IMG/VR virus record: IMGVR_UViG_3300024239_000011
Location: 124,001-188,000 of that record
DNA: 64,000 bases
Direction: 5' to 3' (one strand)
Part shown: piece after piece, positions 8,837 through 43,286 of the stretch
Numbering within the stretch: position 1 is the first letter of the stretch
How the letters are laid out: each line of letters begins with the position of its first letter
Translations under genes and position numbers: made by a program
Notes under the pieces: model-generated
The model's input: the letters and a program-made list of their open reading frames with translations, nothing else
What the model was told of the DNA's origin: nothing
Databases searched by the model: none

Positions 8837-8871
8837 GGTACCCCGACTCCACATACCCATTAAGGGAAACT

Positions 8872-12793: not shown

Positions 12794-12821
12794 ATCTTTA
12801 CCACGTTTACCAACAAGGGGT

Positions 12822-12905: not shown

Positions 12906-12919
12906 TCCGTGGTGAATAT

Positions 12920-23225: not shown

Positions 23226-23252
23226 AAAAGGCGCCCCATTTGGGGCGCCTTT
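23226..23252. terminator. Bidirectional intrinsic terminator
   Basis: AGGCGCCCCA-TT-TGGGGCGCCT hairpin flanked by A/T runs between convergent genes. Confidence 0.75.
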
Positions 23253-23258: not shown

Positions 23259-23335
<77 letters not shown>

Positions 23336-23336: not shown

Positions 23337-24083
23337 TTATGAATATTGGTATACGCGAATTTTCTTAGTGAGGTCAAGATTATTTATCATTTCATCGGCT
23401 AATTTTGTTGAAGATAGCCTGTAGTGTGTAGCGTCCTGTTTCACAAATGGATATCCACATGCATACGAGGCGATTTCAAATGCTTTTTGAACCTCAGTAT
23501 TTTTCTGCACAAAATGCACATATGTATACCAACCTCCGTTCTTGAAGGTTTTATAAACTCCCCCATCAGTTTCAATCAAACCTTTGAGGAACATTTTAAG
23601 GTATTCGTCGGCTGAATATATCCAATCAGGGACAACAAATCCGTTTGTATTTTTGTTCCCAACTGGAAGCGCAAGAGAATTTGGCAAATCTATCCCATAA
23701 ACATAGATTTCAACACAATTCGCATTTTTGTGTTTTCTTTGTTTCGCCGTTTTTCCTGTAATTCTAGTTAATAGCGCCGTATATTCTTCAATAAGATATG
23801 GGTGTGATTGATCACATGATATGAGCAGTTTACAGGATCGTCCAGTTCGCGTCAGACATCCATCACCAGCAAAGACACCCATGAAATACGCCAAATCATT
23901 TGATCTTTCCATTAAAAGAATTTGTTCTCGTTGTTTCGCTTGACGTTTTATTGTTGGACTTATACTTGGCAAATGACGAATGTGCCATCGCACAGTGGAA
24001 GGTGCTATTCCCAAGTCTTCTGCTATTTTTCGGATACTAAATCCATGCTCACGTAATGTAATACATTTCTTACCGATTTCCAT
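23337..24083 (-). CDS. LAGLIDADG homing endonuclease with N-terminal HTH
   Basis: YFMGVFAGDGC and FLKGLIETDGG motifs. Confidence 0.88.
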   Translation of the reverse strand: MEIGKKCITLREHGFSIRKIAEDLGIAPSTVRWHIRHLPSISPTIKRQAKQREQILLMERSNDLAYFMGVFAGDGCLTRTGRSCKLLISCDQSHPYLIEEYTALLTRITGKTAKQRKHKNANCVEIYVYGIDLPNSLALPVGNKNTNGFVVPDWIYSADEYLKMFLKGLIETDGGVYKTFKNGGWYTYVHFVQKNTEVQKAFEIASYACGYPFVKQDATHYRLSSTKLADEMINNLDLTKKIRVYQYS

Positions 24084-25195: not shown

Positions 25196-25921
25196 TCAAT
25201 TTTCTGTTTGTCCGCAATAGGCTGCAATCAATTCGTCAACCAGAGCAGGCACGCCAGTAGTCGCAGTAGCATCGATCACTCGCGTGAAAACTTCATTCTC
25301 GGTCGGGATTGGATTTACCTCAATGATCTGGGCATTCCGTCTATTCATGCTTACCGCTTGCGCGAATAAACTGGCGGGCATGACTTGCCCGGATGTTCCA
25401 ATACTGATGAAAATGTCAGTATGATCTAGAGCAGGTTCGATCAGTCCCAGATGATATGGCAGTTCCCCAAACCATACAACGTCGGGACGCATCGAACCGG
25501 TCGTGCGGCATGATGGGCAAACCATGTCTACCGAAGCATCGCCGTGATGAACGAGTTTTTCCTTGCAATTGGCGCATTTGAGTTTGAGCAGTTCTCCGTG
25601 CATATGGGCAATGCTTTTAGAACCTGCCCGCTCGTGGAGGTCGTCAATGTTCTGGGTGATAATCACAAAGCCATTATTGCTAGGCCAAGCTTGCTCAAGC
25701 TTCGCTAAGGCGTAATGAGCCGCATTTGGTTCGACCGTTATTAGCTTGGCACGCCGTTCATTATAGAACCGATGTACCAATGCTGGATCGCGTTGAAATC
25801 CTTGTGGTGTGGCTACATCTTCAACTTTATGTTTTTCCCACAATCCCATACTGTCACGGAATGTAGGAATACCAGACTCGGCGCTAATACCAGCACCAGT
25901 CAAAATGACTATATTTGGCAT
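25196..25921 (-). CDS. cobB: NAD-dependent deacylase (Sir2/CobB)
   Basis: TGAGISAESGIPTFR, TQNIDDLHERAG, HMHG, RPDVVWFGE, IGTSG. Confidence 0.95.
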   Translation of the reverse strand: MPNIVILTGAGISAESGIPTFRDSMGLWEKHKVEDVATPQGFQRDPALVHRFYNERRAKLITVEPNAAHYALAKLEQAWPSNNGFVIITQNIDDLHERAGSKSIAHMHGELLKLKCANCKEKLVHHGDASVDMVCPSCRTTGSMRPDVVWFGELPYHLGLIEPALDHTDIFISIGTSGQVMPASLFAQAVSMNRRNAQIIEVNPIPTENEVFTRVIDATATTGVPALVDELIAAYCGQTEN

Positions 25922-29867: not shown

Positions 29868-29944
29868 TGGTCGGAGTGGGCGGTTTCGAACCGCCGATCT
29901 CATGCGCCCCATGCATGCGCGTTAGACCACTACGCTACACCCCG
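29868..29944 (-). tRNA. tRNA-Pro(GGG)
   Basis: Cloverleaf, CCA. Confidence 0.93.
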
Positions 29945-29952
29945 TTGAAGAT

Positions 29953-30029
29953 TGGTAGGAACGGCGGGGGTCGAACCCGCAGCATCACTGGTTCTACGCC
30001 AATGTGGTCTACCGATTGCCTACGTTCCC
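29953..30029 (-). tRNA. Atypical short-arm tRNA with Leu(TAG) anticodon and G33
   Basis: Loop CGTAGAA, no variable arm, CCA. Confidence 0.75.
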
Positions 30030-30386
30030 ATATGTGTTAAACTAATCCGATGCGATTTCTACGACGACCCACCCACAACACGTTCACACGAATGCTTCAA
30101 TCGGCTACGTTCGGAACCGTGAAGGGGTTGACTCATCCAGATGGCGTGTTCCTATGGGATGCCTATTATGCCGACCATTCTACGGCGGACGGGCACCTAG
30201 GGATTGATTTGATAGCTGGATACGCCGACGAAACGGTGGCACCATTCATCATCACCCATGAATTCGATGGGGTAATTAGCATTGACGATCTATCGGTCAT
30301 CCCACGGCTTCCGTTTCTGTCGAAATATCAGATCATCACCGCAGAAGAAATTTGACGCCAGACCGACTCATAGGCACATTACGCAT

Positions 30387-30585
30387 ACCGCTCGTTTTGC
30401 CGGGTGGGGAAGGTACTTGCGATGTGGCTGTATTCCTAGGGTGAGAGCAAGCGTCTGACTAAGGGTAGTTCGGGAAGCGATTCAGTAATGGTCAATTGCC
30501 GCCACGTCGTCCCTAATTTGGGTTATCATTACCCGTAAATTACCCATCTTGCTCATGAAACCCCCGGCAATTGCCGGGGGTTTCA
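30387..30585 (+). ncRNA. Candidate pseudoknotted ncRNA of about 200 nt
   Basis: TTGACG-17-CACATT promoter, nested helices, 10-bp loop pseudoknot, terminator. Confidence 0.55.
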
Positions 30586-30590
30586 TTTGT

Positions 30591-30735
30591 ATTGACCAGT
30601 TAAGGTGCCGTGATTTGCGTTTTCACGCCTGATCCAATTCAGGTGGCTTTACCATTCGCCCACTTCCCGGTAAATGGTCGGGAAGGGAGGATTCGAACCT
30701 CCAATTTGCTGTAATCACAACGAGTTCTGGTCAAT
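30591..30735 (-). ncRNA. YrlA-like Y RNA (circularly permuted tRNA-like domain)
   Basis: TTGACCAG/CTGGTCAA terminal helix enclosing T arm, loop-closed acceptor stem, D arm and anticodon-like arm. Confidence 0.7.
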
Positions 30736-30777
30736 TCTGATAGATGACATTTATCATTTCGTATGGTACAATGCGTC

Positions 30778-31260
30778 ATGCTTGTTACGATCTTCGCGGA
30801 CGCATCTTTCTGTCCGAAAACTTTCGCTGCTGGTTGGGCAGCCTGGATAAAATCCGAACGCGGCACTTATCGGGGTGATGGCGCGATGAAAACCATTGTC
30901 CCGGACAACAACCTTGCTGAACTGTATGCCGTGATTAATGCAATCAAGCTGGCATTCGTTTCGGAAGTGGCAGTAGCCGGGGATACGCTGTTGGTGGAAG
31001 CAGATAATCATCGTGCCTTGGCGATCCTAGCAAACCGAGGAAAGAACCTCACTATCCTCGAAAAGAAAGCCGCTACACTACTCAACGGATTGCGCTCAAC
31101 GTATGACTTCACCATCAAACCTAGACACGTAAAGGCGCACTGCGGGACTGCGGTACCGCGCACGTGGGTCCATGATGATTGTGACAAACGCGCTAAGGCA
31201 CGAATGCAAGAAGCGCGTGAGAAATTGGTGCCCCCGACCGGATTCGAACCGGTACCTTGA
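30778..31260 (+). CDS. RNase H-like protein
   Basis: IFADAS, NNLAELYA, EADN, RHVKAH, CDKRAK. Confidence 0.85.
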   Translation: MLVTIFADASFCPKTFAAGWAAWIKSERGTYRGDGAMKTIVPDNNLAELYAVINAIKLAFVSEVAVAGDTLLVEADNHRALAILANRGKNLTILEKKAATLLNGLRSTYDFTIKPRHVKAHCGTAVPRTWVHDDCDKRAKARMQEAREKLVPPTGFEPVP

Positions 31261-31303
31261 CGGGATTTAAAGCCGTTGCCACTGCCAATTGCGCTACGGG
31301 GGC
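31226..31303 (-). tRNA. Atypical short-arm tRNA-Leu(TAA)
   Basis: Cloverleaf, loop TTTAAAT, C31-C39 mismatch, no long variable arm. Confidence 0.75.
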
Positions 31304-31756
31304 GAAAAACTAAATAGAGTCATGAACTACGACATCAACTCCGGTATTGGTAATTGGATGAAGAAGCGCGAGACGCACCTTCACAATCACTTTGGCGATC
31401 AATGGCGCAATACCCTTTGTCGCCGGGTCCACCAGAGCTTGAAGCAAGGCATCCGGACAAGAAACGCATTTCGGCAGCGTGTTCTTAAGGCGCTTTTGCA
31501 GCACCTTAAAGGAAGATGACAACAAGCATCCCATCCGCTATATTGGATGGATTGGAGTTTGTGTCATGCTTAAGAAACATCGCGAATACCTGAAGATTGC
31601 AGAACCGATACTCAAGGAAGCGCACATTCCAGTGATAACCTGTAATGGAGGTCGTCACGTTGCGCTGATGATAAATGGGCATCGGGTTCCCATGTCCGGG
31701 TCATCCCCGGATAAATTCGCCGCTGATCTTCGTAGGATCATCCAACGCGGCAGGAA

Positions 31757-31830
31757 TGAGGGGAAGTAGAGGCATCGAACCTCGCACCTTGCGGTGCCCC
31801 TGTGCCGCTCACCAATACGGTAGCCCTTCC
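31757..31830 (-). pseudogene. tRNA-Ser-like remnant lacking the anticodon arm and CCA
   Basis: 5' end resembles tRNA-Ser(GGA) at 33829; keeps the variable and T arms. Confidence 0.55.
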
Positions 31831-31836
31831 ATGAAA

Positions 31837-31913
31837 TGGTTCCGGGGAGAGGATTCGAACCTCAAACTTTCCTGATTCAAAGTCAGGCGGCCAGACCAAC
31901 CAGCTACCCCGGA
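31837..31913 (-). tRNA. tRNA-Gln(TTG)
   Basis: U1-A72, loop CTTTGAA, CCA. Confidence 0.9.
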
Positions 31914-31919
31914 TTAAAA

Positions 31920-31994
31920 TGGTCGGAGTGACAGGATTTGAACCTGCGACCTCATGCGCCCCATGCATGCGCGCTTCCACTGCGCTACACCCCG
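31920..31994 (-). tRNA. tRNA-Pro(GGG)
   Basis: Cloverleaf, CCA. Confidence 0.93.
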
Positions 31995-31998
31995 TTAA

Positions 31999-32655
31999 TC
32001 ACCAAATCAAATCCTCGACAAAATTCATACCGGATTTCAACCCATTCTTTGGTGGATTGTATCTAACCGTGAATGTGGTTTTTCCCAGGCAACTATCTGG
32101 AAGTCTTATTACTTTGTCTATTAACGGCAAATACACCAAAATAAGATCAATTTCTGCCGCAGAATACGTCAAAACTTTTCCATTTCCATGATCAGACACA
32201 AGGTTGATTACTATACTTCCCTGTGCTTTATCAGATTTTCCGTTTGCGTATTTTACCTGAACTCGCTTTAGTTTCTCGCCATCGTCAAGCACAAAATCAT
32301 AACGAACATCGGTAGTTGGCTTACTCAATACATACCCAAGTTCAGCAGCACGTATTTGGATTTTCAACGCCGCAATTTCACCACGCAAATTAGTGGTAAG
32401 GTTTTCATGCAACGCCTTATGCTCGATCAAACCATATTGTTCGCATCGACGCTGAAAATCATCTGCATTTTTCTTATTCACCGCACGAGCATTTTCTTGC
32501 AAACGAGATTTTAGAATTTCAGCCTGCAATGGATAATCGCGAAGCCAATAACTTGCTGTGCTTTTCGACACATTCAGTTCGGCGGATATTTCTGCCAGTG
32601 ATTTATTCTGTTTACGTAATTCTATTGCTTTTTCTCGTTCCGTTATTTTTGTCAT
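31999..32655 (-). CDS. HTH plus PD-(D/E)XK homing endonuclease
   Basis: RGEIA...RYDFVLD...RVQVK. Confidence 0.85.
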   Translation of the reverse strand: MTKITEREKAIELRKQNKSLAEISAELNVSKSTASYWLRDYPLQAEILKSRLQENARAVNKKNADDFQRRCEQYGLIEHKALHENLTTNLRGEIAALKIQIRAAELGYVLSKPTTDVRYDFVLDDGEKLKRVQVKYANGKSDKAQGSIVINLVSDHGNGKVLTYSAAEIDLILVYLPLIDKVIRLPDSCLGKTTFTVRYNPPKNGLKSGMNFVEDLIW

Positions 32656-32723
32656 TTTCGAACCCTTGACCTATTACTGGTTATATTTAGGTCAAGGGTT
32701 CGAAAATTATATCGGATGTTATT

Positions 32724-32817
32724 TGGCGGAAGACGGAGGTCTTGATCCCCAACCGCAGGGTCACTGCGATCACACTCCTTAGCAGGGAGGTCTAGGCACT
32801 CGCCTAGTTCATCTTCC
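32724..32817 (-). tRNA. 8/4 tRNA-Ser(GCT) with Sec-like 6-bp D stem
   Basis: 8-bp acceptor, 4-bp T stem, G73, long variable arm. Confidence 0.85.
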
Positions 32818-32822
32818 AAAAA

Positions 32823-32908
32823 TGGTTCCGGGAGTAGGAGTCGAACCTACACAGGGCGTTCGCCCCCGCATTCAAAGTGCGGTGTCCTACCAATTAGACG
32901 ATCCCGGA
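32823..32908 (-). tRNA. tRNA-Gln(TTG) with a long variable arm
   Basis: GGGCG-AA-CGCCC variable hairpin; U1-A72, A73. Confidence 0.85.
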
Positions 32909-32913
32909 TCAAT

Positions 32914-33000
32914 TGGCGGAAAGCGGGGTACTCGAAACCCAGACCACGAGGGTCCACATCGCTTAGCAGGCGAGTCCGTGCCCTGCACGGTTCACTTTCC
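32914..33000 (-). tRNA. 8/4 tRNA-Ser(GCT)
   Basis: 8-bp acceptor, 4-bp T stem, 6-bp D stem, G73. Confidence 0.85.
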
Positions 33001-33085
33001 ATGTGAATTGAGTGGTCTGCTGCGCACCGTTCTTCTGTTCGGCGTCTTTGCACATGGGCGCGACCCATGACAGCAGAAATTGTGG

Positions 33086-33710
33086 CTATTTCAGCGCCAA
33101 TCGCAGCCGATCAACACCGATAGCCCAACCAATACCTTCAGCGTAGCGTCCGCCACCAGCAACCTGTTTCTGGGCACCAAGCGAGGAAACCTCCACCTCG
33201 AACCCATCTTCGACGTAGTACGTCAGCCCACGTTTCACCGATTCCACGAAGGTGTATTCGACCGGCAACGCATCGAGGCATCGCCGCAACAACTCCGTGA
33301 CTTCTTCCGTGTCCGCTGGACCAGACCCGCCGAGCAGTTCGACCCCAAACTGAGTGAACTCGCGGTACCTTCCCGCTTGGGGGCGCTCGTAGCGATAGCA
33401 CCGGTTACAATAGAACAGGCGCATCGGCTTTTTAGGCTTGATCTTGCTCCATTGGTCCCGATATAGCTCCTGAACCAAGCCAGTCACTTCCGGGATCAAA
33501 CAGACTGGGCGATTGCCCTTATCGTTGAAAGCCCACATCTGGTTTACGATCTCGGGACCAGCCTTATCGATGAAGGTTTGCTGTTCCCAGATTTCCGGAA
33601 GAATTACTTCCTCGAAACCAGCTTCAGTGAACTACCCTCCGAACAGTATCGATGATCATGCGGTATTGACGAGCGTCATCGCCCATCAGGACTTGTGTGC
33701 CTCGCAACAT
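33086..33710 (-). CDS. Minimal histidyl-tRNA synthetase catalytic core, split by a +1 frameshift near 33630
   Basis: MLRGT...RRVV in frame 0 joins TEAGFEEVILP...YRYERPQAGRYREFTQFGVE...RGLTYY...AGGGRY...GWAIGVDRL in the +1 frame. Confidence 0.85.
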
Positions 33711-33735
33711 TGTCTTGCCTTTCGTTTGCGTAGTT

Positions 33736-33812
33736 TGGGGTGGCTGACGGGGTACGATCCCGCAACCTTCGCAGTCACAGTGCGACGCTCTACCAATTGA
33801 GCTACAGCCACC
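33736..33812 (-). tRNA. tRNA-His(GTG) with encoded G-1:C73
   Basis: Cloverleaf, loop CTGTGAC. Confidence 0.93.
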
Positions 33813-33828
33813 ACAGAAATTAAAGAAT

Positions 33829-33921
33829 TGGCGGAAGGGAAGGGACTCGAACCCCCAAACCCCCTTGCGGAGATCAAACACCTTTCCAAGGTGCGCTGTT
33901 CGCCAGTACAGTAGCCCTTCC
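33829..33921 (-). tRNA. tRNA-Ser(GGA)
   Basis: 7/5 cloverleaf, long variable arm, G73. Confidence 0.92.
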
Positions 33922-33946
33922 ATGGTAACTATTGTTACCATTTAAT

Positions 33947-34023
33947 TGGTCGGTGTGGAGGGACTTGAACCCCCATGATAACCTGTCCCCGAGACAGGTG
34001 GCTTACCATTGGCCCACACACCG
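33947..34023 (-). tRNA. tRNA-Pro(CGG)
   Basis: Cloverleaf, CCA. Confidence 0.9.
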
Positions 34024-34025
34024 GT

Positions 34026-34116
34026 TGGCGGAAATTGATGGCATCGAACCATTGACCCTACTTAGGTGTCACCATCGTTTTCAAGACGATTTAGGGAGCC
34101 AACCCTGGCAATTTCC
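34026..34116 (-). tRNA. 8/4 tRNA-Ser(TGA)
   Basis: GGAAATTG/CAATTTCC acceptor, ATGG/CCAT T stem. Confidence 0.88.
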
Positions 34117-34172
34117 ATTGAAGTTGGTGCGGCGGACAGAGATCGACCCTGCACTACCAAATTCCAACAGTA

Positions 34173-34251
34173 TGGTCGGCGCGGCGAGATTCGAACTCGC
34201 GATCTCGTGTTCCCGAAACACGCGGGGACGACCAGACTCCCCTACGCACCG
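34173..34251 (-). tRNA. tRNA-Pro(CGG)
   Basis: Cloverleaf, CCA. Confidence 0.9.
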
Positions 34252-34344
34252 TTACCTGTTGACAAGGCACCACGAGGTGCCTACACGTTGAAAATCTCGG
34301 CACCAGGGCTTCGGCGCCCTTATTTGGTGGGAAGTCCCATGAAA

Positions 34345-34411
34345 TGGTGCGGTCGAGGGGACTTGCCATGCGTGTCTGAGACGCACCTGTATACCATTCC
34401 AGCACGACCGC
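34345..34411 (-). pseudogene. tRNA-Leu(CAG) with variable arm and part of the T arm deleted
   Basis: Intact acceptor, D and anticodon arms; 67 nt; CCA. Confidence 0.7.
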
Positions 34412-34840
34412 GATTGACTTAATGAATTACTTGGTGTATAGTATTGGTTCAACGGGAGAGCAGCCCATGAACCCGAAAGAACGCGAACAAGCATTGTGCG
34501 CTTTGTACAGCAAGTACAAGGACGAACCGCTGAAGGCGCTCGAAGAGTTCTTCGAAATCAGTTCGCACGATTGGCTGCTCAACTATCGCCACGAAGGCGA
34601 ATGTCTCGATCCCCACATTTACACGTGGGTCGAATTCGAAGCGTTGAACGACCCCCGCATCTATGGCAGCTTCAAGGTGATTTCTAAATCGTCCCTGGTG
34701 GGAAGAAAGTTCGAAATCCGTTGGCATTGGGACGGCGGTCTTCCGAACATGTTGTTGCCCGTGATCCGCTTCACCGATGTCTGGTTCCTGCCACGAGAAA
34801 TGAAGTACGTGCAGCGAGAGGCAGCATAGTTTATAGATGG

Positions 34841-34927
34841 TGGTGCGGCTGACTGGACTCGAACCAGCACGGGAAATTCTTCCCCAGGCTTCTCAGACCT
34901 GTGTGTATACCATTCCACCACAGCCGC
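34841..34927 (-). tRNA. tRNA-Leu(GAG)
   Basis: Cloverleaf with long variable arm. Confidence 0.93.
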
Positions 34928-35104
34928 ATTGTTCTATTCGCGTTCGTCGCGGTAATTCCGATACGCCGCGAAGATGGTGTCCTCACCAAGGTCAGTGATT
35001 TCCGGTGAAACCTTCTCGACATCAAGTGAAGCGACCACGATCACTACCTTCCCTTCCGGGGTAAGGTACGCTTTGTCTTGAACCAACATGTTGAAATCCA
35101 AAAA

Positions 35105-35323
35105 TGGTGGAGGCGAGGGGATTCGAACCCCCGTAGACCGCATAGACCCAAGCATTACCAAGGGCTGGACTTAGGTTTAGAACTTTGGGTGCCCGCTGAC
35201 AGCTTTCGGAAGCCAGAAGGTCGGTCCAAACGAACCCCAAATCCACTTGCGCATGCGTCCCGGTTTTACCCGAGCCGTTGTTCTGTTCCACGGTGCCTAT
35301 GCCGAACTCAGGCGGACGCCCCC
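35105..35323 (-). ncRNA. Short tmRNA-like RNA (219 nt)
   Basis: GGGGGCG/CGCCTCC-ACCA acceptor with G3-U70, T arm, GCATAGGC/GTCTATGC helix, no D stem. Confidence 0.7.
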
Positions 35324-35377
35324 AAATGTTTGACCCATACAAGGATCAGGCAGTTTTGACCCTTGTGGGTCAAAAAT

Positions 35378-35462
35378 TGGTTCCGGGTGATGGACTCGAA
35401 CCACCACAAGGTTTTCACCCACGCATTCAGAGTGCGTTGACCTACCATTAGTCGAACCCGGA
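35378..35462 (-). tRNA. tRNA-Gln(CTG) with a long variable arm
   Basis: GGGT-GAAA-ACCT variable hairpin; U1-A72, A73. Confidence 0.85.
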
Positions 35463-35526
35463 TCAAAGCAAAAGGGCGTGGACCTTATGATCCACGCCCT
35501 CTGCCAAGGGAAACCTGTGTTGTTGA

Positions 35527-35940
35527 TTACCGGCGCCGAGCGCCATACGACCGATGCGGCACCATGTCGTGCTGGTCATAATAATTATTGGGGTTATCGT
35601 AAAACTCATCGCGCTGGGCGCCGTTATCTTGCTGTTGATAGGCGCGAACCCCGTACTCACGCTGCTGTTGCTGCTGCATATACATACAGTCCGCCCGATC
35701 CAGCGACGAACCGACTTCGTTACCGGCGGCGGCACCCAGCAGAGTACCGATGGCAGTCATCGCCAGATTACCGTTGCCCTTACCGAACTGAGCGCCAGCG
35801 ACAGCACCACCAACACCACCCAGAACGGCACCACCGGTCTGCTTGTTAAAACCGAAACCACCGCCGCACGAATTGGCGGGCGATTGAGCGCAGGCGCTCA
35901 GAGCGATGGTGGCGGCGATGGCAAGAAGAATGCGGCGCAT
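35527..35940 (-). CDS. Glycine-zipper lipoprotein (rickettsial 17-kDa antigen-like)
   Basis: LSAC lipobox; KQTGGAVLGGVGGAVAGAQFGKG...SLDRAD. Confidence 0.85.
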   Translation of the reverse strand: MRRILLAIAATIALSACAQSPANSCGGGFGFNKQTGGAVLGGVGGAVAGAQFGKGNGNLAMTAIGTLLGAAAGNEVGSSLDRADCMYMQQQQQREYGVRAYQQQDNGAQRDEFYDNPNNYYDQHDMVPHRSYGARRR

Positions 35941-36023
35941 GGTGACCTCCCTCAAAATCATGAATACAGTATATCTACTGCAATCCAAGATGTCAAGGGA
36001 GGGCCAAGAAGTTTTTCTTGCTA

Positions 36024-36566
36024 CTACTTCACGCCGCACCAGTCGAGCCAGAAATCACCGATGAAATTGCGTTCACCGGGCTGCGTCGAAGGAATATCCA
36101 CTTCGATCCGCTGCCGACAGGACAGTACCTTGCCGGTATTAGGATGGTCGTCGCATCTCCCATACACCTTTGTGATGTAGGCGACCCGACCATCCTTCAG
36201 CGCAAACGCTTCACCAACCTTTGGATTGGCGCCGGGGGCGTCGAAGAGGATCATCGTGGCATCGTCGCTAATACACGCAAGATAAATCGTGCGCGAACGA
36301 AAAACCGCTTCCGAATTCTTGCCTTGCGGTACGAACACCATGTCCTTGCGATCATCGGCGCGATCCATCCCAGTGACGAACCCAGTCACCGTTTTTCCCT
36401 TCACTGAAACCCGTCCGGGATGGGTGAAGAATGTGTCCGGTTCACGAGTAACCCGTACCGTGCGACGAACCCCATCGGGGCAAAGTACATTGGAATACTT
36501 GGTGGTAATGTAGAAGTGACCAACGGTTACGGCTTCCGCTACCACATCATAAGCATTGGGGCGCAT
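36024..36566 (-). CDS. Hypothetical protein
   Basis: GGAGG RBS, 180 aa. Confidence 0.6.
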   Translation of the reverse strand: MRPNAYDVVAEAVTVGHFYITTKYSNVLCPDGVRRTVRVTREPDTFFTHPGRVSVKGKTVTGFVTGMDRADDRKDMVFVPQGKNSEAVFRSRTIYLACISDDATMILFDAPGANPKVGEAFALKDGRVAYITKVYGRCDDHPNTGKVLSCRQRIEVDIPSTQPGERNFIGDFWLDWCGVK

Positions 36567-36624
36567 GAACAGCCTCCGAGCTAGAGAGAAACACCACCCT
36601 AGCGAGTTATCTGCGCCTCGTCAA

Positions 36625-36701
36625 TGGTGGGAACGGTCGGACTCGAACCGACAGCATCTTTCTTTTTGAGAGAAAGTGGTCTACCAATTGCCTACGTTCC
36701 C
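36625..36701 (-). tRNA. Atypical short-arm tRNA-Leu(CAA)
   Basis: 6-bp anticodon stem, no variable arm, CCA. Confidence 0.8.
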
Positions 36702-36845
36702 ATAATTCCGAGCCAATGATCACGGCGGCGGCTCATCTTCCACCAGTTCACGCCTTTCCAGAGTCACCCACACCATTGAACAACTGCCTAGGATAGTTGA
36801 ACATTGGCTTAATGGCAGATTGGAGTTTGCTGAACGATCTCACCT

Positions 36846-36922
36846 TGGTCGGGGATGTGAGAATCGAACTCACTTGATATCCTGCTCCCAAAGCAGGCGG
36901 CTCGCCTTTAGCCCAATCCCCG
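36846..36922 (-). tRNA. tRNA-Pro(TGG)
   Basis: Cloverleaf, CCA. Confidence 0.9.
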
Positions 36923-37318
36923 TTGATTAAAGAATTCTGAGATCACTTGACGGATATTCATGAGGGTCTTGTGCGATCCCAATAATGGATTCCGAGCGAA
37001 CAGTGATCGTTTCTGGGTAGACATTGCAATCAAGCTCTACGTCAAACACAGGGTCACGATCTTTGAACAGACCGAAGAACCGGGTCACCACGACGGAACG
37101 GATACCGACGACCTTGCCGATCCTTCCGCCGTTAAGTTCAACCATAGTTCCGATGCTGATATTTTCTTGCTTCATGCAAGTATTTACGGGGGTTTCCCGA
37201 AGATAATCAGCGGTGTTTGACGCCCCATCCATTCATTTTCACAACCAGCCCCACTCACCCGCTGTTGTGATCTTGCGGCACATTTTCGCAAATGCTCACC
37301 CCGCATCTTGCCGTATAT

Positions 37319-37395
37319 TGGTCCGGGTGGTGAGAATCGAACTCACTTGATGTCCTGTTCCCAAAACAGGCGGCTCGCCTTTAGCCCACACCCGG
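37319..37395 (-). tRNA. tRNA-Pro(TGG)
   Basis: Paralog of the 36846 copy. Confidence 0.9.
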
Positions 37396-37422
37396 TAATA
37401 CTTCGTCGCGTATCCATTGATT

Positions 37423-37505
37423 TGGTGGGCGGGTGCGGTTACGATCCACTCCCCGAAGGATAGGTTTTACAGACCTACTGCTAGAGCCACTAGCTTTACC
37501 CGCCC
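37423..37505 (-). tRNA. 8/4 tRNA-Tyr(GTA)
   Basis: GGGCGGGT/ACCCGCCC acceptor, GTGG/CCGC T stem. Confidence 0.82.
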
Positions 37506-37571
37506 GGTGTCTTGACAAATGTCTAGTATACTAGACATAAAGTCGGTTACTGTTGGCTATAACTAACATTA

Positions 37572-37648
37572 TGGTGGGAACGGCGGGAGTCGAACCCGCA
37601 GCATCACATATGCTGAGTATGTGTGGTCTACCAGTTGCCTACGTTCCC
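37572..37648 (-). tRNA. Atypical short-arm tRNA-Leu(CAG)
   Basis: Same body as the 36625 copy, loop CTCAGCA. Confidence 0.8.
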
Positions 37649-37655
37649 TGAAATT

Positions 37656-37739
37656 TGGTGGACAGGGAGGGAATTTGCACCCCCACAGCTTTCGCGTCGC
37701 GTTTACAGCGCGGTGAACTCACTCGTGTTCAGCCTGTCC
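37656..37739 (-). tRNA. Atypical tRNA-Tyr(GTA) with an 8-nt T loop
   Basis: Loop CTGTAAA; T loop TGCAAATT. Confidence 0.75.
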
Positions 37740-37740
37740 A

Positions 37741-37831
37741 TGGCGGAATGTGATAGCATCGAACTATTGACCCTGCTTAGGTGTCACCACGGCTTTCGAA
37801 ACCGATTAGGGAGCCAACCCTGGCACATTCC
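37741..37831 (-). tRNA. 8/4 tRNA-Ser(CGA)
   Basis: Paralog of the 34026 copy. Confidence 0.88.
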
Positions 37832-37845
37832 AAATATTTTATAAA

Positions 37846-37936
37846 TGGCGGAAAGTGATGGCATCGAACCATTGACCCTACTTAGGTGTCACCACAATTT
37901 AGCAAATTGCTTAGGGAGCCAACCCCGGCACTCTCC
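37846..37936 (-). tRNA. 8/4 tRNA-Ser(GCT)
   Basis: Paralog of the 34026 copy. Confidence 0.88.
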
Positions 37937-37937
37937 A

Positions 37938-38014
37938 TGGTGGGGACAGCGGGACTCGAACCCGCAGCATCACTGGTTCTTAGCCAATGTGGTCTACCAA
38001 TTGCCTATATCCCC
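37938..38014 (-). tRNA. Atypical short-arm tRNA-Leu(AAG)
   Basis: Loop CTAAGAA, A34, no variable arm. Confidence 0.8.
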
Positions 38015-38024
38015 GTCTTAAGTT

Positions 38025-38103
38025 TGGGGTGATGAGCCGGATTCGAACCGCGCACCTTCGCTTTCACAGAGCGATATGCAGACACCGCCACACCATCATC
38101 ACC
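38025..38103 (-). tRNA. tRNA-His(GTG) with G-1:C73 and a bulged T stem
   Basis: Loop CTGTGAA, CCA. Confidence 0.82.
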
Positions 38104-38247
38104 ATAAAACTTTGTTGATGCGCATTTATTCGCGCATCCTATCTAGAAAAATTTCCCCTTTTTCGGCACTGTACCAAGGATTCAAACCTCAGTTACCCCA
38201 ATCGCCAGGACTGGTGATGCTTCAATCTCTCTAAGATGCCAAGGGGA

Positions 38248-38388
38248 TTTGACCAGTTAAGGTGTTGTGATTTGCGTTTTCACGCCTGATCCCAATTCAG
38301 GTGGCTTTACCATTCGCCCATATTCCAATGCTGGAATAGTCGGATTCGAACCGACAATTTGCTGTAATCACAACGAGTTCTGGTCAAA
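38248..38388 (-). ncRNA. YrlA-like Y RNA, second copy
   Basis: Near-identical frame to the 30591 copy; acceptor stem closed by a GCAT loop. Confidence 0.7.
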
Positions 38389-38391
38389 ACT

Positions 38392-38482
38392 TGGTAGGCA
38401 GGGAGGGATTCGAACCCCCTTGTTTACCCTAAGGGGCTGGATTTACAGTCCAGTGCTACACCACCGTCGTAGCCGCCTGCCC
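38392..38482 (-). tRNA. tRNA-Tyr(GTA)
   Basis: CTGGA-CTGTAAA-TCCAG arm, variable arm, CCA. Confidence 0.9.
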
Positions 38483-38712
38483 ATATTCAGTCGTCAATGC
38501 ATGTCTGGACGATCTCCCAATCATAGGAGTTCAGGTCCGATTTTGACTGAAGTTTCTGTTTGTAGTAGGACACCATTCCGCTCGGACACCCAAGCGTCTT
38601 CACGATGTCGTTGCTCGGCACGCCTTTCTTAATCAGGCGCACGATTTCCTCTTGAAAGGTCATAACTGCATCCTTGCTGCATTGCAACAATATTTAGGAT
38701 GCGAAGAAAATT

Positions 38713-38786
38713 TGGCTGGGGAAGTAGGACTCGAACCCACATGAACGCAGTCAGAGTGCGTCATCCTGCCATTAGATGATTCCCCA
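38713..38786 (-). tRNA. tRNA-Gln(CTG)
   Basis: Canonical cloverleaf, U1-A72, G73. Confidence 0.93.
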
Positions 38787-38825
38787 AAACTAAATAAACA
38801 ATCACTAAAAGCGAGGGAGAGATTT

Positions 38826-38918
38826 ATGGCGACTGCTATCATCATCAGCAAGTACATCTGGATAGCCAGCGCAATTGCGTTTGGTACTTTCATCGCGTAT
38901 CGCAGGTTTCGCCGCTAA
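38826..38918 (+). CDS. 30-aa single-TM peptide with a basic tail (not in the ORF track)
   Basis: TAAATA at 38791, GGGAG RBS, MATAIIISKYIWIASAIAFGTFIAYRRFRR. Confidence 0.6.
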   Translation: MATAIIISKYIWIASAIAFGTFIAYRRFRR

Positions 38919-39424
38919 CGCATGATTGCATTTTACGGGACAACCTGATATAGTCTCGGTTCAAAATGCCGGGTTGCGGTCCTGAAATCTCACCTCCTGA
39001 ACCGCAACCCGCCGTACCGTTGAGGGGAAGCATGGCAGTGCTTTCCCCGGCGGGCGTTATTGATGCGCCACTACCCGCTAGGCGGTGCAACAATCTTTCG
39101 ATCATCACACATTCTCTAGAACGCCGGAAACCAGGGGGTGGGCTACCACCATCGCTGTGAGTTACGTGCCCTTACACGCTCTCACTCCCTACCAGTCGTC
39201 CCAGCCGTACCTCTCGGATTGGCTGAAATTCGGTTTGAAGCAACAACCGCCGCTTCGATGCCCTAATGACTACACCGCATTTTTCGGTTCGTCAATTCTT
39301 TTTTGCGTTCGTTTGTATTTTTATTTTCGAACGCTGGGTAAATACTTTTCAATAATTACCCAATACTTCCCCGTTGTGAAGCATTACTTCTCGCTTCACT
39401 TACGGGTTTGAACCCCAGATAAAC

Positions 39425-39646
39425 AAAAACCCCGCAGACCTTTATCCGGGTCGCGGGGTTTTGGTGGGGGTTCTTTTGAACCCTATGTGTGCTTTGTCAG
39501 CACGCACCAACCTCCCGCTTGCCCGGATAGGGCAACGGCTGCGAAGAGAGTTGGCTGGACTGTAACGCAAACGCACGCACGCCATTCCCCTCGCACCCGG
39601 CGAGTGAAAGATGGCTATGCAGTAGGTTCACATTCACGACGATCAT
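39425..39646 (-). promoter_or_regulatory. Ribosome-dependent transcription attenuator: 49-aa leader (39497-39646) plus terminator (39425-39462)
   Basis: RBS-led leader ORF; alternative 1:2, 2:3 and 3:4 pairings; U-tract; upstream of the tRNA array. Confidence 0.7.
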
Positions 39647-39693
39647 CGTCTTCAGTCCCTTTGCGTCGTCGGCAAAATTGCCTTCAACAAATC

Positions 39694-39701
39694 TATTTAT
39701 A
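39694..39701 (-). promoter_or_regulatory. T4-type late promoter TATAAATA
   Basis: Exact T4 late consensus; TAAATA recurs before more than 20 genes in the window. Confidence 0.7.
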
Positions 39702-41461
39702 ACGGAAGCTCGTTTCGCTGTCCACATCGTTCAAAAACTCGTGGATCACGTTCCTGTCCGTTCACCATGGACGATAGGCGCCCTTGATACTCTTGTCAAA
39801 TAATTTTTCAGTGGTGCTACGCATGCCCGAAACGGTTATGCACCAGCGGGGTATGATGTTTAGCTGTGACGTGCTGGCTTTTAACGATCAATTTTACAAC
39901 ATGATGAAGCATTTCGTTCCGTGCGCCCTCGGGAAACATATTAATGAGTTGACCAATCCCTGCACCCAAGGTGTCTAACACCACGGTATAGGGTATCGAC
40001 GGGTTGTCAGGGAATTCAGCCCCGAATTGGTTGATCGCACTGTCTACCAAGGCAGATAAGCTGGCATAGAGTTCTTCAACGGCATTGGCAATGCGTTCAT
40101 CGGTATCAGTCATACCGATATTTAGTGGATGAGATATTCTGGTTCCGAGAGAGATAGTAAAGGTCGGTAAGCTGTTTTTCATTCATGCCATCACCTGTTA
40201 AAACAGAGTGAGTATAGGCTATTGATTTCCATGCGCAACGAACAGATTCGATCCACAATCTCGGGATCAAGATCAAATTCTTCGCAAATCTGCTCGAACG
40301 TGAGAAGGATACCATCCTTAAGCATCCCAACCGAAGCAGTGCCAATGCTGTCGATGTATTCCCGCTTTGCCTCAAATGCCGTCAGGAATTCACCCTCGAT
40401 AGCGCCTTGACCCTGTGAAGCGACTATCTGATAGATTCGTTCCATCACGAACCCCCGTTAAAGACCCAATGGGAGACGATCTTCTGAAATGCCTTCTGAA
40501 GATTCGTCGGGAGTTTGTCGAACTCGGTGTAGCCCAGGTACGCGCCGGGATTATTCTCGACGTGAATTGCACGCGCTTCAACAAACGCCGCTCGATAGGC
40601 AGCAGTCACCATATTGGGCGGCAGATCAGTGACCAAATTTTCATGGGAGCCTGGGGCGGGTGCAGGCGTGCCGGTGGGGATGTATTTGTCTTCCCCTACC
40701 CACCAAGCACCAAGGCATTCTTCGCGTGCCTTCATGATGGTCAATTCAGGACGCAGGGTGCAAAACGACCGTGGATATTCTTCGGAATGATGTTGCCCAC
40801 GTTTTTGGCACTTCCGGCAGAGCTTAACCATTATAGGTTCTCCAACTCACGGGCAATACGTTCACCCACTTCAATGGGAAGCGGACCTAGGTCGGTCACG
40901 GTCATCTGGATACTAACACGCCGGGCAATAGCCGCAGCTTCTAGATTCGACACCATCGGAACAATACGCGCACCAATGATTCGATGAAGCTGTATATCAA
41001 CCCGAGCAAGATCACAATCACCATAAATGACGGCATAGTCTACCCGATCTACCCAACGGTCTGCGCCACTGGAAAAGAATTGGTTTTTGTCGTTCTGGAT
41101 CAGAAAAAGACGAATCATTGGTTCCTCACGGTGTTACGCAATGGCTGAATGCATTCAGATCAGCCACGTCAATGTCTTCGATACCGGTTACGATCAATGC
41201 GCGCCCACGTGTTTCGTGAACGTCCACATCCCAATATCCAATCAACCAAACCATATCATATGCAGATGCTTCAATCCGTTTAGCGACCGCTTTATCGGTG
41301 GTATATGCGCACACAGGGAAGTACCCGTGCATACCGCCGGGGATATCAGCGCAAATGTTTGGTGTGAATTGCCAAATGTCGGGTTCCGGCAGATTTGGTT
41401 GGGTTGCGCCGTCACCAACGACACTCCCAAGCTTTGCTTGTATATGAAAGACTTTCATTTC

Positions 41462-42593: not shown

Positions 42594-43286
42594 TTAATCT
42601 ACATACCGGGCGGGGAATACCTTCGCCCACTTATCCGGGTCGTAAAATTCCCCCGCAATGGATGCCTCGAACATTTCCATCCGAACCTTCAGCATTTCTG
42701 CTGTCGGCATCGGCGGAAATAACGAGATCGGTTTGAGATCGGTCCATTTAGCCCGTCCACGCCCTTGGCGGCATGAAACCGCATATTCGTTCGTCCCATC
42801 CCGACGTTGGATGCGGTTGATCTGATAGATGGTCGTAAACGGGTTGTCTTCTGGCTCAAAAGAGAACAATTTTGACTCGACAACCTTCCGGAGGCTTTCA
42901 GGCATCAGGAGGACACTACCCGCCACATTTTCCCAATACTCACCCACCGGGGAGATCACGCACAAATGTTGCTTCTTGAACCAGTAGGACCGTGCCTTGG
43001 CTTGGGAAGCTGGATCATTCTTCTTGAACATCGCGGCGACAATGTTCTGAACGTGGTCATTTTCAAACCCGTAAGTCCGCAAACTCGGGATCGCTACTCG
43101 CACATCACGCTTTTCGATGTCTTTGAAAGGTAGATCGAAAAACATGTATTGTTGCCAGATTTCCGCATTGGAGAACTGCCGAATAGTGAACTCCATGTTT
43201 TCACCTTCCGGAAACTCCGCGAGACGAATCAGCCACTCGAAAGTGGATGGATCATAGGGGTTTGGGGAGTTGATCCATGTTTTCAT
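42594..43286 (-). CDS. Hypothetical protein coupled to aspS
   Basis: 4-nt overlap with the aspS stop. Confidence 0.65.
   Translation of the reverse strand: MKTWINSPNPYDPSTFEWLIRLAEFPEGENMEFTIRQFSNAEIWQQYMFFDLPFKDIEKRDVRVAIPSLRTYGFENDHVQNIVAAMFKKNDPASQAKARSYWFKKQHLCVISPVGEYWENVAGSVLLMPESLRKVVESKLFSFEPEDNPFTTIYQINRIQRRDGTNEYAVSCRQGRGRAKWTDLKPISLFPPMPTAEMLKVRMEMFEASIAGEFYDPDKWAKVFPARYVD

Follow-up and report, generated by a model that had tools for sequence, protein, structure and literature searches.

A predicted leader-peptide attenuator upstream of the tRNA operon of a giant phage

Organization of the leader region and of the downstream tRNA array

To characterize the region preceding the tRNA genes of a giant phage (a contig of 543 kb or more), we analyzed a 64,000-nt stretch of the IMG/VR virus record IMGVR_UViG_3300024239_000011 (positions 124,001 to 188,000), hereafter called the window. 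Just upstream of the block of tRNA genes, the minus strand carries a promoter, a 49-codon ORF, and a U-tailed terminator, followed by a promoter-like motif, a structured RNA, and the first tRNA block (Table 1). The original prediction had described a late promoter, a ribosome-binding site, a leader peptide with two blocks composed only of Leu, His, Ser, Gln, Pro, and Tyr codons, and three RNA segments of which the second could pair with either the first or the third, and these sequence observations were confirmed and are well beyond chance. The peptide and its codons were as described, with 7 Leu residues using all six Leu codons, 6 Ser residues using five Ser codons, and both Gln codons present. 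Segment 1 pairs with segment 2 in the minimum-energy fold, and segment 2 can instead pair with segment 3.

Table 1. Coordinates of the features at the locus ("set" denotes the codons of Leu, Pro, Gln, His, Ser, and Tyr)
Feature	Coordinates	Strand	Description
Promoter	39694..39724	-	-35-like TGGACA (39724-39719), 17-nt spacer, TATAAATA (39701-39694); expected transcript start about 39687
AAGGGA element	39661-39656	-	9 nt before the ATG
Leader ORF	39497..39646	-	ATG at 39646; 49 codons plus stop TGA (39499-39497); 7 set-free, 8 set-only, 12 set-free, 14 set-only, and 8 set-free codons
Putative sensing block 1	39602..39625	-	Codons 8-15, LLHSHLSL; on the 5' arm (a) of hairpin a:b
Hairpin a:b	39564..39634	-	-30 kcal/mol; arm b (about 39601-39566) can pair with arm c instead
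Putative sensing block 2	39524..39565	-	Codons 28-41, LQSSQLSSQPLPYP; covers arm c and the apex of hairpin c:d
Hairpin c:d	39506..39555	-	-24.8 kcal/mol; segments 1 and 2 are its outer arms
Segment 1	39554-39541	-	
Segment 2	39518-39505	-	
Predicted antiterminator strand d	39505..39529	-	UAUCCGGG, GCGGG, and UUGGUG, separated by two 3-nt internal loops; ends 5 nt before the stop codon
Hairpins H4 and H5	39468..39503	-	H4 about 39503-39489, H5 39483-39468; enclosed by the antiterminator as a three-way junction
Segment 3	39466-39453	-	
Predicted antiterminator strand e	39443..39466	-	CACCAA, CCCGC, and CCCGGAUA; segment 3 plus the terminator's 5' arm plus the terminator loop
Intrinsic terminator e:f	39421..39458	-	CCCCGC..GCGGGG stem-loop at 39458-39430 (-20 kcal/mol), then TTTTTGTTT
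Promoter-like motif	39269..39295	-	TTGACGAAC..CGGTGTAGT
Conserved structured RNA	39119..39225	-	About 110 nt, between the attenuator and the first tRNA
First downstream block	29868..38786	-	About 24 tRNA genes (Leu, Pro, Gln, His, Ser, Tyr only), small ORFs, a HisRS fragment, and a sub-threshold tmRNA-like match
Terminator-like hairpin	30586-30555		Palindromic; within the first downstream block

The ATAAATA core of the promoter lies just upstream of at least 14 genes or tRNAs of the window in the right orientation, including the tail sheath and a gp13-like gene, and no other such motif occurs on this strand between 39693 and 27713. The spacing between AAGGGA and the ATG is at the long edge of the 6 to 8 nt typical for this phage. 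ARAGORN, Rfam, and manual folds identified only Leu (6 anticodons), Pro (3), Gln (2), His, Ser (4), and Tyr tRNAs downstream of the leader, the last two tRNAs lying just beyond the left edge of the window and being followed by 10 kb without tRNAs. Thus, the claim that the blocks use exactly the families of the downstream array holds. An Rfam search at gathering thresholds on the whole window, and at E values up to 10 on 38400-40000, returned only tRNAs and chance matches, with no T-box riboswitch and no His_leader, Leu_leader, Thr_leader, or Trp_leader in the latter interval, while the weak Leu_leader matches elsewhere in the window, at 29.2 and 30.6 kb, were plain terminators. No protein family in Pfam or PHROGs matched the leader ORF.

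Codon-family match and predicted alternative folds

The 22 leader codons belonging to the six families fall in exactly two runs, with none among the other 27 codons, and the combinatorial P for two or fewer runs is 1.6e-10. The 14-codon run is the longest such run among 128,000 codon positions in the six frames of the window, the next longest being 12 and 10 codons, whereas the other two frames of the leader give 54% and 38% set codons. Since arms a and c are pyrimidine-rich and arms b and d are G-rich, base composition contributes to the block pattern, but dinucleotide shuffles within the blocks gave P of about 1e-4 for the 14-codon run and 5e-5 for both blocks together, and the idea that pyrimidine-rich hairpin arms alone produce the blocks was rejected on this basis and on that of frame specificity. 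Moreover, of 38,760 possible six-family sets, the set of the array fits the peptide best. One part was weaker than the original prediction had implied, as codon diversity alone is not significant (P of about 0.07 for distinct codons and 0.03 to 0.05 for the use of all six Leu codons).

To evaluate the proposed switch, the alternative states were folded, a check that had been named beforehand. The 14-nt duplex of segments 2 and 3, tested without the terminator loop, was not above chance (P = 0.15), and only the extended duplex between strands d and e, which includes the terminator loop, was significant, with 19 bp at -33.8 kcal/mol against -21.3 ± 3.0 in shuffles (P = 0.001). Its z-score of -5.0 was an outlier, with two others, among 35 terminator-like hairpins, most of which lie between -2.2 and +1.3. 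In addition, the b:c duplex is -29.4 kcal/mol against -20.5 ± 2.9 in shuffles (P = 0.0055), and the global terminating and read-through folds differ by only 4 kcal/mol (-114.7 against -110.7). Masking a 28-nt ribosome footprint removed the terminator from the predicted fold only at codons 8, 11, and 12 (block 1) and codons 34 and 35 (block 2) and never in the set-free segments, so that equilibrium modeling, which takes no account of kinetics and depends on the assumed footprint, gives read-through at 5 of the 22 sensing codons. With a ribosome placed from codon 40 up to the stop, strand d is masked and the terminator forms. No mask removed the terminator in any of 69 shuffled leaders.

Conservation in a diverged relative

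To test whether leader codons track array content in related phages, we examined a relative, designated L023, whose AspRS is 69% identical and whose gene order (AAA-ATPase, AspRS) is the same, and this relative supplied the decisive evidence. The closest cellular matches to the AspRS are alphaproteobacterial. L023 has the same six-family array, preceded by a homologous promoter (6 differences in 33 nt), a homologous 48-codon ORF with the same start, stop, and layout, and a terminator. Its set-only runs are 9 and 14 codons long (shuffle P of 0.003 and 0.0002), and only 3 of 38,760 sets fit its peptide as well as the set of the array. The counterpart of block 1 is SHSLSHLQP, a different sequence from the same families, and that of block 2 is QLQSSLLSQPLPYP, again the longest such run in that locus. 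This layout is retained although the bases from the 5' UTR through arm b, in the first half of the leader, differ at 50 to 58% of positions, and every amino acid replacement inside the blocks stays within the set. An in-frame TAA lies 12 nt upstream of the L023 ATG, so the 76-codon version of the ORF in the window is not conserved.

The hairpins are likewise retained. Hairpin c:d is conserved with one compensatory pair (CG to UA) and matched loss of the outermost pairs, H4 and H5 are kept with changed sequence, and the terminator is conserved with three compensatory pairs and a T6 run. Synonymous sites in the conserved codons 35 to 46 barely change (3 of 12 codons, with two of those changes forming one compensatory pair), indicating that RNA-level selection acts on top of coding. 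Mapping the pairs of the window onto L023 column by column failed for a:b, because that part is too diverged to align, and independent folding of each sequence was used instead. The same relay of b:c plus d:e appeared when block 1 of L023 was masked (codons 6 to 9), which only 1 of 70 shuffles reproduced, and the b:c duplex of L023 is -22.9 kcal/mol (P = 0.03). However, the antiterminator is weaker in L023, where its helices sit at homologous positions but the d:e duplex taken alone is no better than chance (-19.8 kcal/mol, P = 0.5), helix i is only partly kept, and masking block 2 does not remove the terminator at equilibrium.

Only two homologous leaders exist in all collections searched, so covariation rests on one pairwise comparison. 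A blastn search of the locus and of tRNA segments against 50,697 phage records gave no match for the locus and only single-tRNA matches. A word-index protein search with the 76-aa ORF and with the upstream 121-aa gene found only the same phage and missed the L023 leader, which was reached through AspRS. A metagenome scan with the antiterminator pattern gave three chance matches plus the source contig, and an IMG/VR scan with the two-leader alignment, a profile search of 1.84 billion representative proteins, and cluster look-ups found no third homologue. Near-identical strains (L006 to L009) and a 95 to 97% identical strain (L015) show no change from 39669 to 39045 and give no covariation. Two further relatives, L021 and L022 (AspRS 71% identical), end before any array, whereas L005 (46% identical) does not share the gene order. 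The 49 kb downstream of the Phosso tail sheath contain no tRNAs, so gene order is not shared there either.

Interpretation as an attenuator and alternative explanations

Considering these results together, the locus is best explained as a ribosome-mediated (leader-peptide) transcription attenuator between a late-type promoter and the first operon of the phage's tRNA array, a reading to which we assign a probability of about 0.75. In this view, transcription would start about 6 nt after TATAAATA, and a ribosome would translate the leader while RNA polymerase moves on, the leader RNA adopting either a terminating fold of three hairpins (a:b, c:d, and e:f) or a read-through fold in which b pairs with c and d pairs with e, taking up the 5' arm and loop of the terminator. 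Codons for the six families occur only on arms a and c. A stall on a would free b, b would take c, and d would then be free to take e, whereas a stall on c would free d directly, so that in either case polymerase would continue into the conserved small RNA and the tRNA genes. If all these codons were read quickly, the ribosome would reach the set-free tail and the stop codon and cover d, and e:f would terminate transcription, and with no translation the three ground-state hairpins would form and transcription would also terminate. Because the products are the tRNAs that the leader tests, the circuit would act as a negative-feedback supply control. The analysis itself shows the sequence anatomy, the nonrandom match between leader codon families and array content, the two alternative folds with their in silico dependence on footprint masking, and the conservation of the ORF, block layout, promoter, hairpins, and terminator in a diverged relative, whereas translation of the ORF, an effect of stalling on read-through in vivo, and the signal that depletes the tRNAs (host anticodon nucleases, phage-induced loss of host tRNAs, or simple codon demand late in infection) are inferred, with no experimental evidence of translation, stalling, or regulated read-through.

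The original prediction, that stalling on any depleted tRNA frees segment 2 and switches on replacement tRNAs, HisRS, and a tmRNA-like RNA as an inducible counter to tRNA-destroying defenses, was therefore only partly supported. Its core, a leader whose sensing codons match the downstream tRNA families coupled to a terminator/antiterminator switch, is supported by statistics, by structure modeling with controls, and by the homologous leader in front of a homologous array. However, the switch is a three-hairpin relay rather than a simple 1-2-3-4 scheme, and the antiterminator is longer than had been proposed. Any depleted tRNA is too strong, since in the model only stalls in block 1 and the middle of block 2 remove the terminator and stalls at the last Pro/Tyr codons cover segment 2. 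Control of the array is too broad as well. The about 24 tRNA genes of the first block have no other ATAAATA promoter, but the promoter-like motif between the terminator and the first tRNA, flagged originally as a site at 39290, is the only conserved island in an otherwise unalignable spacer between the window and L023 and, despite its poor -10 match, may be an attenuator-independent entry point for RNA polymerase that could feed the array. Distal tRNAs at 12905 and 8958 have their own ATAAATA promoters, the "HisRS" is a 150-aa fragment, and the tmRNA-like match is below the Rfam threshold. The antidefense purpose is inference only.

Three other explanations were considered, each of them unlikely. 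A real attenuator might report general translation capacity or amino acid starvation rather than the state of these particular tRNAs, any slow ribosome giving read-through and the family match reflecting shared history or codon supply. Consistent with this, in truncated-transcript models the d:e helix forms whenever d is not covered by a ribosome, whichever codon is occupied, and codon diversity within the families is not significant. This view does not explain, however, why set codons are strictly confined to arms a and c and absent from arm b, the tail, and the N terminus in two phages that differ at half their bases there, nor why the array's own set ranks first for the window's peptide. 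Slightly less likely is a small protein gene with an ordinary terminator, the RNA alternatives being by-products of neighboring inverted repeats. The ORF was predicted by gene callers, is conserved in length and frame, has a nearly invariant C-terminal third around QPLPYPGKREV, and in the window carries a lipobox-like LAGC at residues 15 to 18. Nevertheless, a lipoprotein (spanin-like small lipoprotein) was rejected because L023 has QPTG in place of LAGC, and the N-terminal region is poorly hydrophobic. Synonymous positions in the conserved part are frozen or covary with their pairing partners, and neither the antiterminator complementarity nor the mask-dependent switch is expected for a plain gene. 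Leader peptides of attenuators can also act in trans (PMC7298713), so a peptide function would not exclude attenuation.

Similarly unlikely is an untranslated structured RNA or hairpin cluster, either an sRNA gene with its own promoter and terminator or a switch operated by a protein or by tRNA binding, with an incidental ORF. The region is very structured (z = -6.0 for 39415-39700 and z = -8.2 for 39230-39570), more perfect hairpins follow the terminator in the window, and a terminated leader would in any case be a stable RNA of about 265 nt. Against this, the frame stays open with the same start and stop across a strongly diverged region containing indels, the family-restricted runs are frame specific, the hairpins after the terminator are not conserved in L023, and no Rfam family matches.

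Among described systems, the his operon attenuator (hisL) of Salmonella and E. coli likewise combines a short leader ORF with a dense run of regulatory codons, an intrinsic terminator, and more than two competing hairpins, an extra hairpin lying between the pause hairpin and the terminator (PMC1183508). Its classical description is A:B, C:D, and E:F against B:C and D:E, with termination after completed translation and read-through with a stalled ribosome. hisL, however, senses one amino acid (7 His codons) and controls biosynthetic enzymes in a bacterium, whereas here six families are sampled in two blocks on two different arms in front of phage tRNA genes, without sequence or covariance-model similarity. 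Multivalent attenuators such as the ilvGMEDA and thr leaders are listed among known attenuators (PMC1183508). In these, one leader carries codons for several amino acids (Leu, Val, and Ile; Thr and Ile), so that shortage of any relieves termination. They sense two or three products of the regulated pathway, whereas the present leader uses 17 of the 22 codons of six families, matching tRNA genes and not enzymes. The pheST leader (pheM) and T-box riboswitches also couple the tRNA or charging state to transcription of translation-apparatus genes through a terminator/antiterminator choice, but pheM controls a synthetase operon and senses Phe only, and T-boxes bind uncharged tRNA directly and need no translation. 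Phage tRNAs, as in T5, T4, and other phages, can replace host tRNAs that are cleaved by defense nucleases or lost during infection (PMC10264068, PMC11555353, PMC11464382), giving a plausible reason to regulate such genes by decoding capacity, although those studies concern the tRNAs themselves and describe no sensor or feedback control of their transcription.

Leader-peptide attenuation is a textbook mechanism known for amino acid biosynthesis and a few synthetase operons in bacteria, and we found no report of a leader-peptide attenuator in front of tRNA genes, in phage or bacterium. Here, the same logic appears in front of the tRNA genes of a giant phage, with codon content that mirrors the array in two diverged phages. 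A further reading, which we consider only slightly more likely than not, is that giant phages carry a decoding-capacity sensor that samples almost every codon species of the six encoded tRNA families and opens late transcription of a roughly 24-tRNA operon only when one of those codons is read slowly, a self-correcting tRNA supply responding to tRNA loss, whether caused by host anticodon nucleases or by the phage's own shut-off of the host. It would be the first attenuator known to control tRNA genes and the first leader-peptide attenuator described in a phage. If confirmed, phage tRNA genes would be regulated by a feedback measuring how well the matching codons are decoded, rather than simply being expressed, which bears directly on why phages carry tRNAs (codon supply, replacement of degraded host tRNAs, or escape from tRNA-cleaving defenses), and a reporter fused to this leader would read out which tRNAs become limiting during infection. 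The finding also gives a sequence-only search rule, that leader codon families equal array families, for finding similar sensors in other large phages.

The structured RNA preceding the first tRNA, which would be the first conserved product of read-through, has 35 predicted pairs, 8 of them with compensatory double changes between the window and L023, and no Rfam match.

Leader, downstream tRNA array and codon match

The locus belongs to the 543-kb IMG/VR contig UViG_3300024239_000011 (window coordinate equals contig coordinate minus 124,000), which derives from a giant myovirus whose tail sheath is 46-49% identical to those of Sinorhizobium phage Phosso and Agrobacterium phage Atu_ph07. This phage also carries gp13- and gp15-like genes and an AspRS whose closest cellular relatives are alphaproteobacterial. 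The same phage region sits in an ENA contig of 869,618 bp (ERZ27245855 k141_178484), compared with 543,035 bp for the IMG/VR contig, indicating either that the genome is much larger than 543 kb or that one of the assemblies is chimeric or concatenated.

Everything described in the original prediction is present in the sequence, and its observation is thus confirmed: the promoter element, the ribosome-binding site, the leader ORF, the three pairing segments at the coordinates assigned to them and the U-tailed terminator were all recovered. As predicted, the 7 Leu codons of the leader use all six Leu codons, the 6 Ser codons use five Ser codons, and both Gln codons occur. We additionally identified a -35-like TGGACA exactly 17 nt upstream of TATAAATA, and AAGGGA lies 9 nt before the ATG.

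Coordinates of the leader, its predicted structures and neighboring features in the window and in the related contig L023 (ENA k141_509556)
Feature	Window coordinates	Strand	L023 coordinates
Promoter element TATAAATA	39701-39694	-	
Leader ORF (49 codons in the window, 48 in L023)	ATG at 39646, stop at 39499-39497	-	6486-6632
14-codon set-only run (block 2)	39565-39524	-	
Hairpin a:b	39634-39564	-	
Hairpin c:d	39555-39506	-	
Antiterminator strands d and e	39529-39505 with 39466-39443	-	
U-tailed terminator (e:f)	39458-39421	-	
Three perfect hairpins without U-tails	39304-39405	-	
Promoter-like motif TTGACGAAC..CGGTGTAGT	39295-39269	-	
Conserved structured RNA, about 110 nt	39119-39225	-	about 7100-7210 (+)
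tRNA array	7582-38786	-	8183-13797 (+)
About 24 tRNA genes with only the leader's ATAAATA upstream	38786-29868	-	
Element of about 145 nt	38248-38388 and 30592-30734	-	9665-9807
Sub-threshold tmRNA match	35105-35323	-	
HisRS fragment (150-aa ORF)	33086-33538	-	
Full-length AspRS	43283-45151		
tRNA-Leu genes with their own ATAAATA	12905 and 8958		
ATAAATA 3-5 nt before start codons	55122, 49231 and 60891	-	
ATAAATA 3-5 nt before a start codon	58638	+	
Recombination-like patch in the 121-aa gene	39847-39985		
Palindromic terminator	23227-23252	-	
tRNA-Pro next to this terminator	23259-23335		
Weak hairpin	4084	+	
Genes among or near the tRNA genes	25196-25921, 31999-32655 and 23337-24083		

ARAGORN at two sensitivities, Rfam and manual folding revealed only six families from 38786 to the last tRNA, namely, Leu (anticodons taa, caa, tag, cag, gag, and aag), Pro (tgg, ggg, and cgg), Gln (ttg and ctg), His (gtg), Ser (gga, tga, cga, and gct), and Tyr (gta). 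Two more Ser genes lie just past the left edge of the window, followed by 10 kb without tRNAs, and the only other tRNA is a Val gene 9 kb upstream of the leader. The family set is therefore defined independently of the leader. Two further products named in the original prediction proved weaker than stated, as the HisRS is a fragment that matches only positions 56-144 of the HisRS core model and lies between tRNA-Gln and tRNA-His, while the tmRNA-like RNA, with a T-arm and CCA end, scored 28 bits against a gathering score of 47 and was not recognized as a tmRNA by ARAGORN. Interspersed among or near the tRNA genes, in the window and in two loci of the 869,618-bp ENA contig (L010 and L012), are genes for SIR2, PD-(D/E)XK+HTH, LAGLIDADG and HNH endonucleases, Gad2-domain proteins, an IS605 OrfB/TnpB-like gene, a CCA-adding enzyme, an AI-2E transporter-like protein, and a PHB depolymerase.

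The match between leader codons and array is not explained by chance. Block 2 is the longest run of these six families in all six frames of the 64-kb window (128,000 codon positions), with the next longest runs being 12, 10, 10, and 10. We considered that the blocks might simply reflect pyrimidine-rich hairpin arms, but dinucleotide shuffles within the blocks rejected this, giving a P of about 1e-4 for the 14-codon run in any frame, 0.5-3% for the 8-codon run (block 1), and 5e-5 for both together. Moreover, the property is frame-specific, with the other two frames containing 54% and 38% codons of the six families (set codons). Among all 38,760 possible six-family sets, that of the array ranked first for the two longest runs in the peptide, and all 22 set codons lie in the two blocks and none in the other 27 codons (combinatorial P of 1.6e-10). 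In contrast, codon diversity alone is weak, with a P of about 0.07 overall and 0.03-0.05 for all six Leu codons, and we do not count it as evidence.

Predicted alternative folds and promoter context

The region is unusually structured, with z of -6.0 for 39415-39700 and -8.2 for 39230-39570. The predicted ground state is a chain of hairpins consisting of a:b (-30 kcal/mol), c:d (-25 kcal/mol), two small hairpins, and the terminator e:f (-20 kcal/mol), in which block 1 lies on arm a and block 2 lies on arm c and the apex of c:d, while the set-free codons (those of none of the six families) lie on arm b and on arm d plus the tail. The predicted antiterminator is larger than originally proposed, since strand d pairs with strand e through three helices (8, 5, and 6 bp) that take up the 5' arm of the terminator and its loop. 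This duplex has an energy of -33.8 kcal/mol against -21.3 ± 3.0 kcal/mol for shuffles (P = 0.001), whereas the 14-nt version of the original prediction alone gave a P of 0.15. Among 35 terminator-like hairpins in the window, this one has a z of -5.0 for complementarity to its upstream region, while most lie between -2.2 and +1.3, with two other outliers. Unusually strong upstream complementarity was also seen for a palindromic terminator next to a tRNA-Pro (z = -4.8), probably to the tRNA 3' end, and a weak hairpin at 4084 had a z of -5.9. Arm b can pair with arm c instead (-29.4 kcal/mol, P = 0.0055), and the terminating and read-through global folds differ by only 4 kcal/mol.

To model ribosome stalling, a 28-nt footprint was forced to stay unpaired at each codon in turn. 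In these equilibrium models, which depend on the assumed footprint and switch at only a minority of the block codons, the terminator disappeared from the minimum-energy fold only for A-site codons 8, 11, and 12 (block 1, through b:c and then d:e) and 34 and 35 (block 2, directly), and never for codons in the set-free segments. From codon 40 to the stop, the modeled ribosome covers d and the terminator stands. None of 69 dinucleotide-shuffled leaders lost the terminator at any position. This is the logic of a relay attenuator of the his type, for which the general scheme and the extra his hairpin have been described (PMC1183508).

The core ATAAATA occurs 22 times in the window, with at least 14 copies sitting just upstream of genes or tRNAs in the right orientation, including the tail sheath, the gp13-like gene, and two tRNA-Leu genes. 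By analogy with TATAAATA of T4, it is inferred to be probably the late promoter. Upstream of several structural genes, including the tail sheath, ATAAATA lies so close to the start codon that, if it is the late promoter, these mRNAs would be leaderless or nearly so, or the annotated starts are wrong. On the minus strand, there is no other copy between 39693 and 27713, and about 24 tRNA genes therefore have only the leader's copy upstream. However, distal tRNAs have their own copies, the array is interrupted by plus-strand genes, and the promoter-like motif downstream of the terminator, raised as a caveat in the original prediction (site at 39290), is the one conserved island in the spacer between this phage and its relative and may be an independent promoter. 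Thus, the putative attenuator probably gates late-promoter transcription into the first tRNA operon rather than the whole array.

A homologous leader in a diverged relative

Direct searches recovered only the same phage, whose strains show no change in the leader. In the 121-aa gene just upstream of it, two strains (L006 and L008) differ at 33 positions within 140 nt, mostly with a 3-nt period, while the flanks are identical, which looks like a recombination patch. Searching with the nearby AspRS revealed two relatives, one of which, designated L023, is a 13.8-kb contig with a 69% identical AspRS and the same order AAA-ATPase, AspRS. L023 has, 3.5 kb downstream of its AspRS, a tRNA array of Pro, Leu, Tyr, Ser, His, and Gln only, plus one Pro-like gene with an expanded, 10-nt U-rich anticodon loop. 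In both diverged phages, the array holds nearly every isoacceptor of these six families and several duplicates.

Between the AspRS and the array, L023 carries a homologous element consisting of the same promoter (6 differences in 33 nt), the leader ORF, and a terminator with a T6 run. Its peptide has the same layout, with 5 set-free codons, 9 set-only codons (SHSLSHLQP), 12 set-free codons, 14 set-only codons (QLQSSLLSQPLPYP), and 8 set-free codons before the stop. The 14-codon run is again the longest in all six frames of that locus, and only 3 of 38,760 six-family sets fit this peptide as well as the set of the array. An in-frame TAA lies 12 nt before its ATG, so only the 48/49-codon ORF is conserved and not the 76-codon version reported by gene callers for the window.

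The two leaders differ at 50-58% of bases from the 5' UTR through arm b, but at only 12% in block 2, 19% in the tail, and 18% in the promoter, and at 73% after the terminator. In the fast-evolving half, the frame, the length, and the family-only composition are nevertheless kept, every replacement inside the blocks stays within the six families, and the set-free segments stay set-free. In the slow half, even synonymous sites are nearly frozen, with two of the three synonymous changes forming one compensatory pair in c:d, and the terminator has three compensatory pairs. Folding of L023 on its own predicted the same hairpin chain, and with block 1 masked it gave the same b:c plus d:e relay and lost the terminator, which was observed in one of 70 shuffles; its b:c duplex has a P of 0.03. 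L023 is weaker in two respects, as its d:e duplex alone is at chance level (-19.8 kcal/mol, P = 0.5) and masks on block 2 do not switch its fold at equilibrium.

Interpretation and neighboring conserved elements

Taken together, the interpretation in the original prediction is partly supported. The sequence elements, the codon match, the alternative folds with their controls, and the conservation in one independent homologue were established here and support its core, a leader-peptide attenuator, to which we assign a probability of about 0.75. That the leader is translated and that stalling alters read-through in the cell are inferred from sequence and equilibrium models, and control over the whole array and a counter-defense purpose remain unproven inferences. 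The element carries the sequence-level features that define a leader-peptide attenuator but matches none of the Rfam leader families or T-box. Known leader-peptide attenuators control biosynthetic and some synthetase operons (PMC1183508), from which this element differs in host, target genes, and number of families sensed. Full-text literature searches found no attenuator described in front of phage tRNA genes, and phage tRNAs are currently discussed as codon supply or as replacements for tRNAs destroyed by defense nucleases (PMC10264068, PMC11555353, PMC11464382), with no control circuit described there.

Other explanations appear less likely. An incidental ORF in a structured RNA is unlikely given the conserved frame and layout across half-diverged sequence. 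A stand-alone small protein is not excluded, because the C-terminal third is nearly invariant; however, the lipobox-like LAGC is not conserved, no protein family matched in Pfam or PHROGs, and a plain gene does not predict the switch, while leader peptides can also have trans functions (PMC7298713). A sensor of general translation speed is a variant of the main model, considered improbable here, and it does not explain the strict placement and identity of the families.

Beyond the terminator, the three perfect hairpins that directly follow it (z as low as -7.7) are not conserved in L023, where a 62-aa ORF occupies the spacer. A structured RNA between the attenuator and the first tRNA is conserved between the two phages, with 35 predicted pairs, 8 of them with compensatory double changes, a GAGA-loop hairpin, and an invariant stretch around GAUGGUGGUAGCCCAC, and it had no Rfam match. 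In addition, an element present twice in the window (about 95% identical) and once in L023 (77%) has terminal inverted repeats (TTGACCAG..CTGGTCAA) and an internal T-arm-like hairpin followed by an acceptor-like 3' end, suggesting that it may be a tRNA-derived or mobile mini-element or an unrecognized RNA gene.
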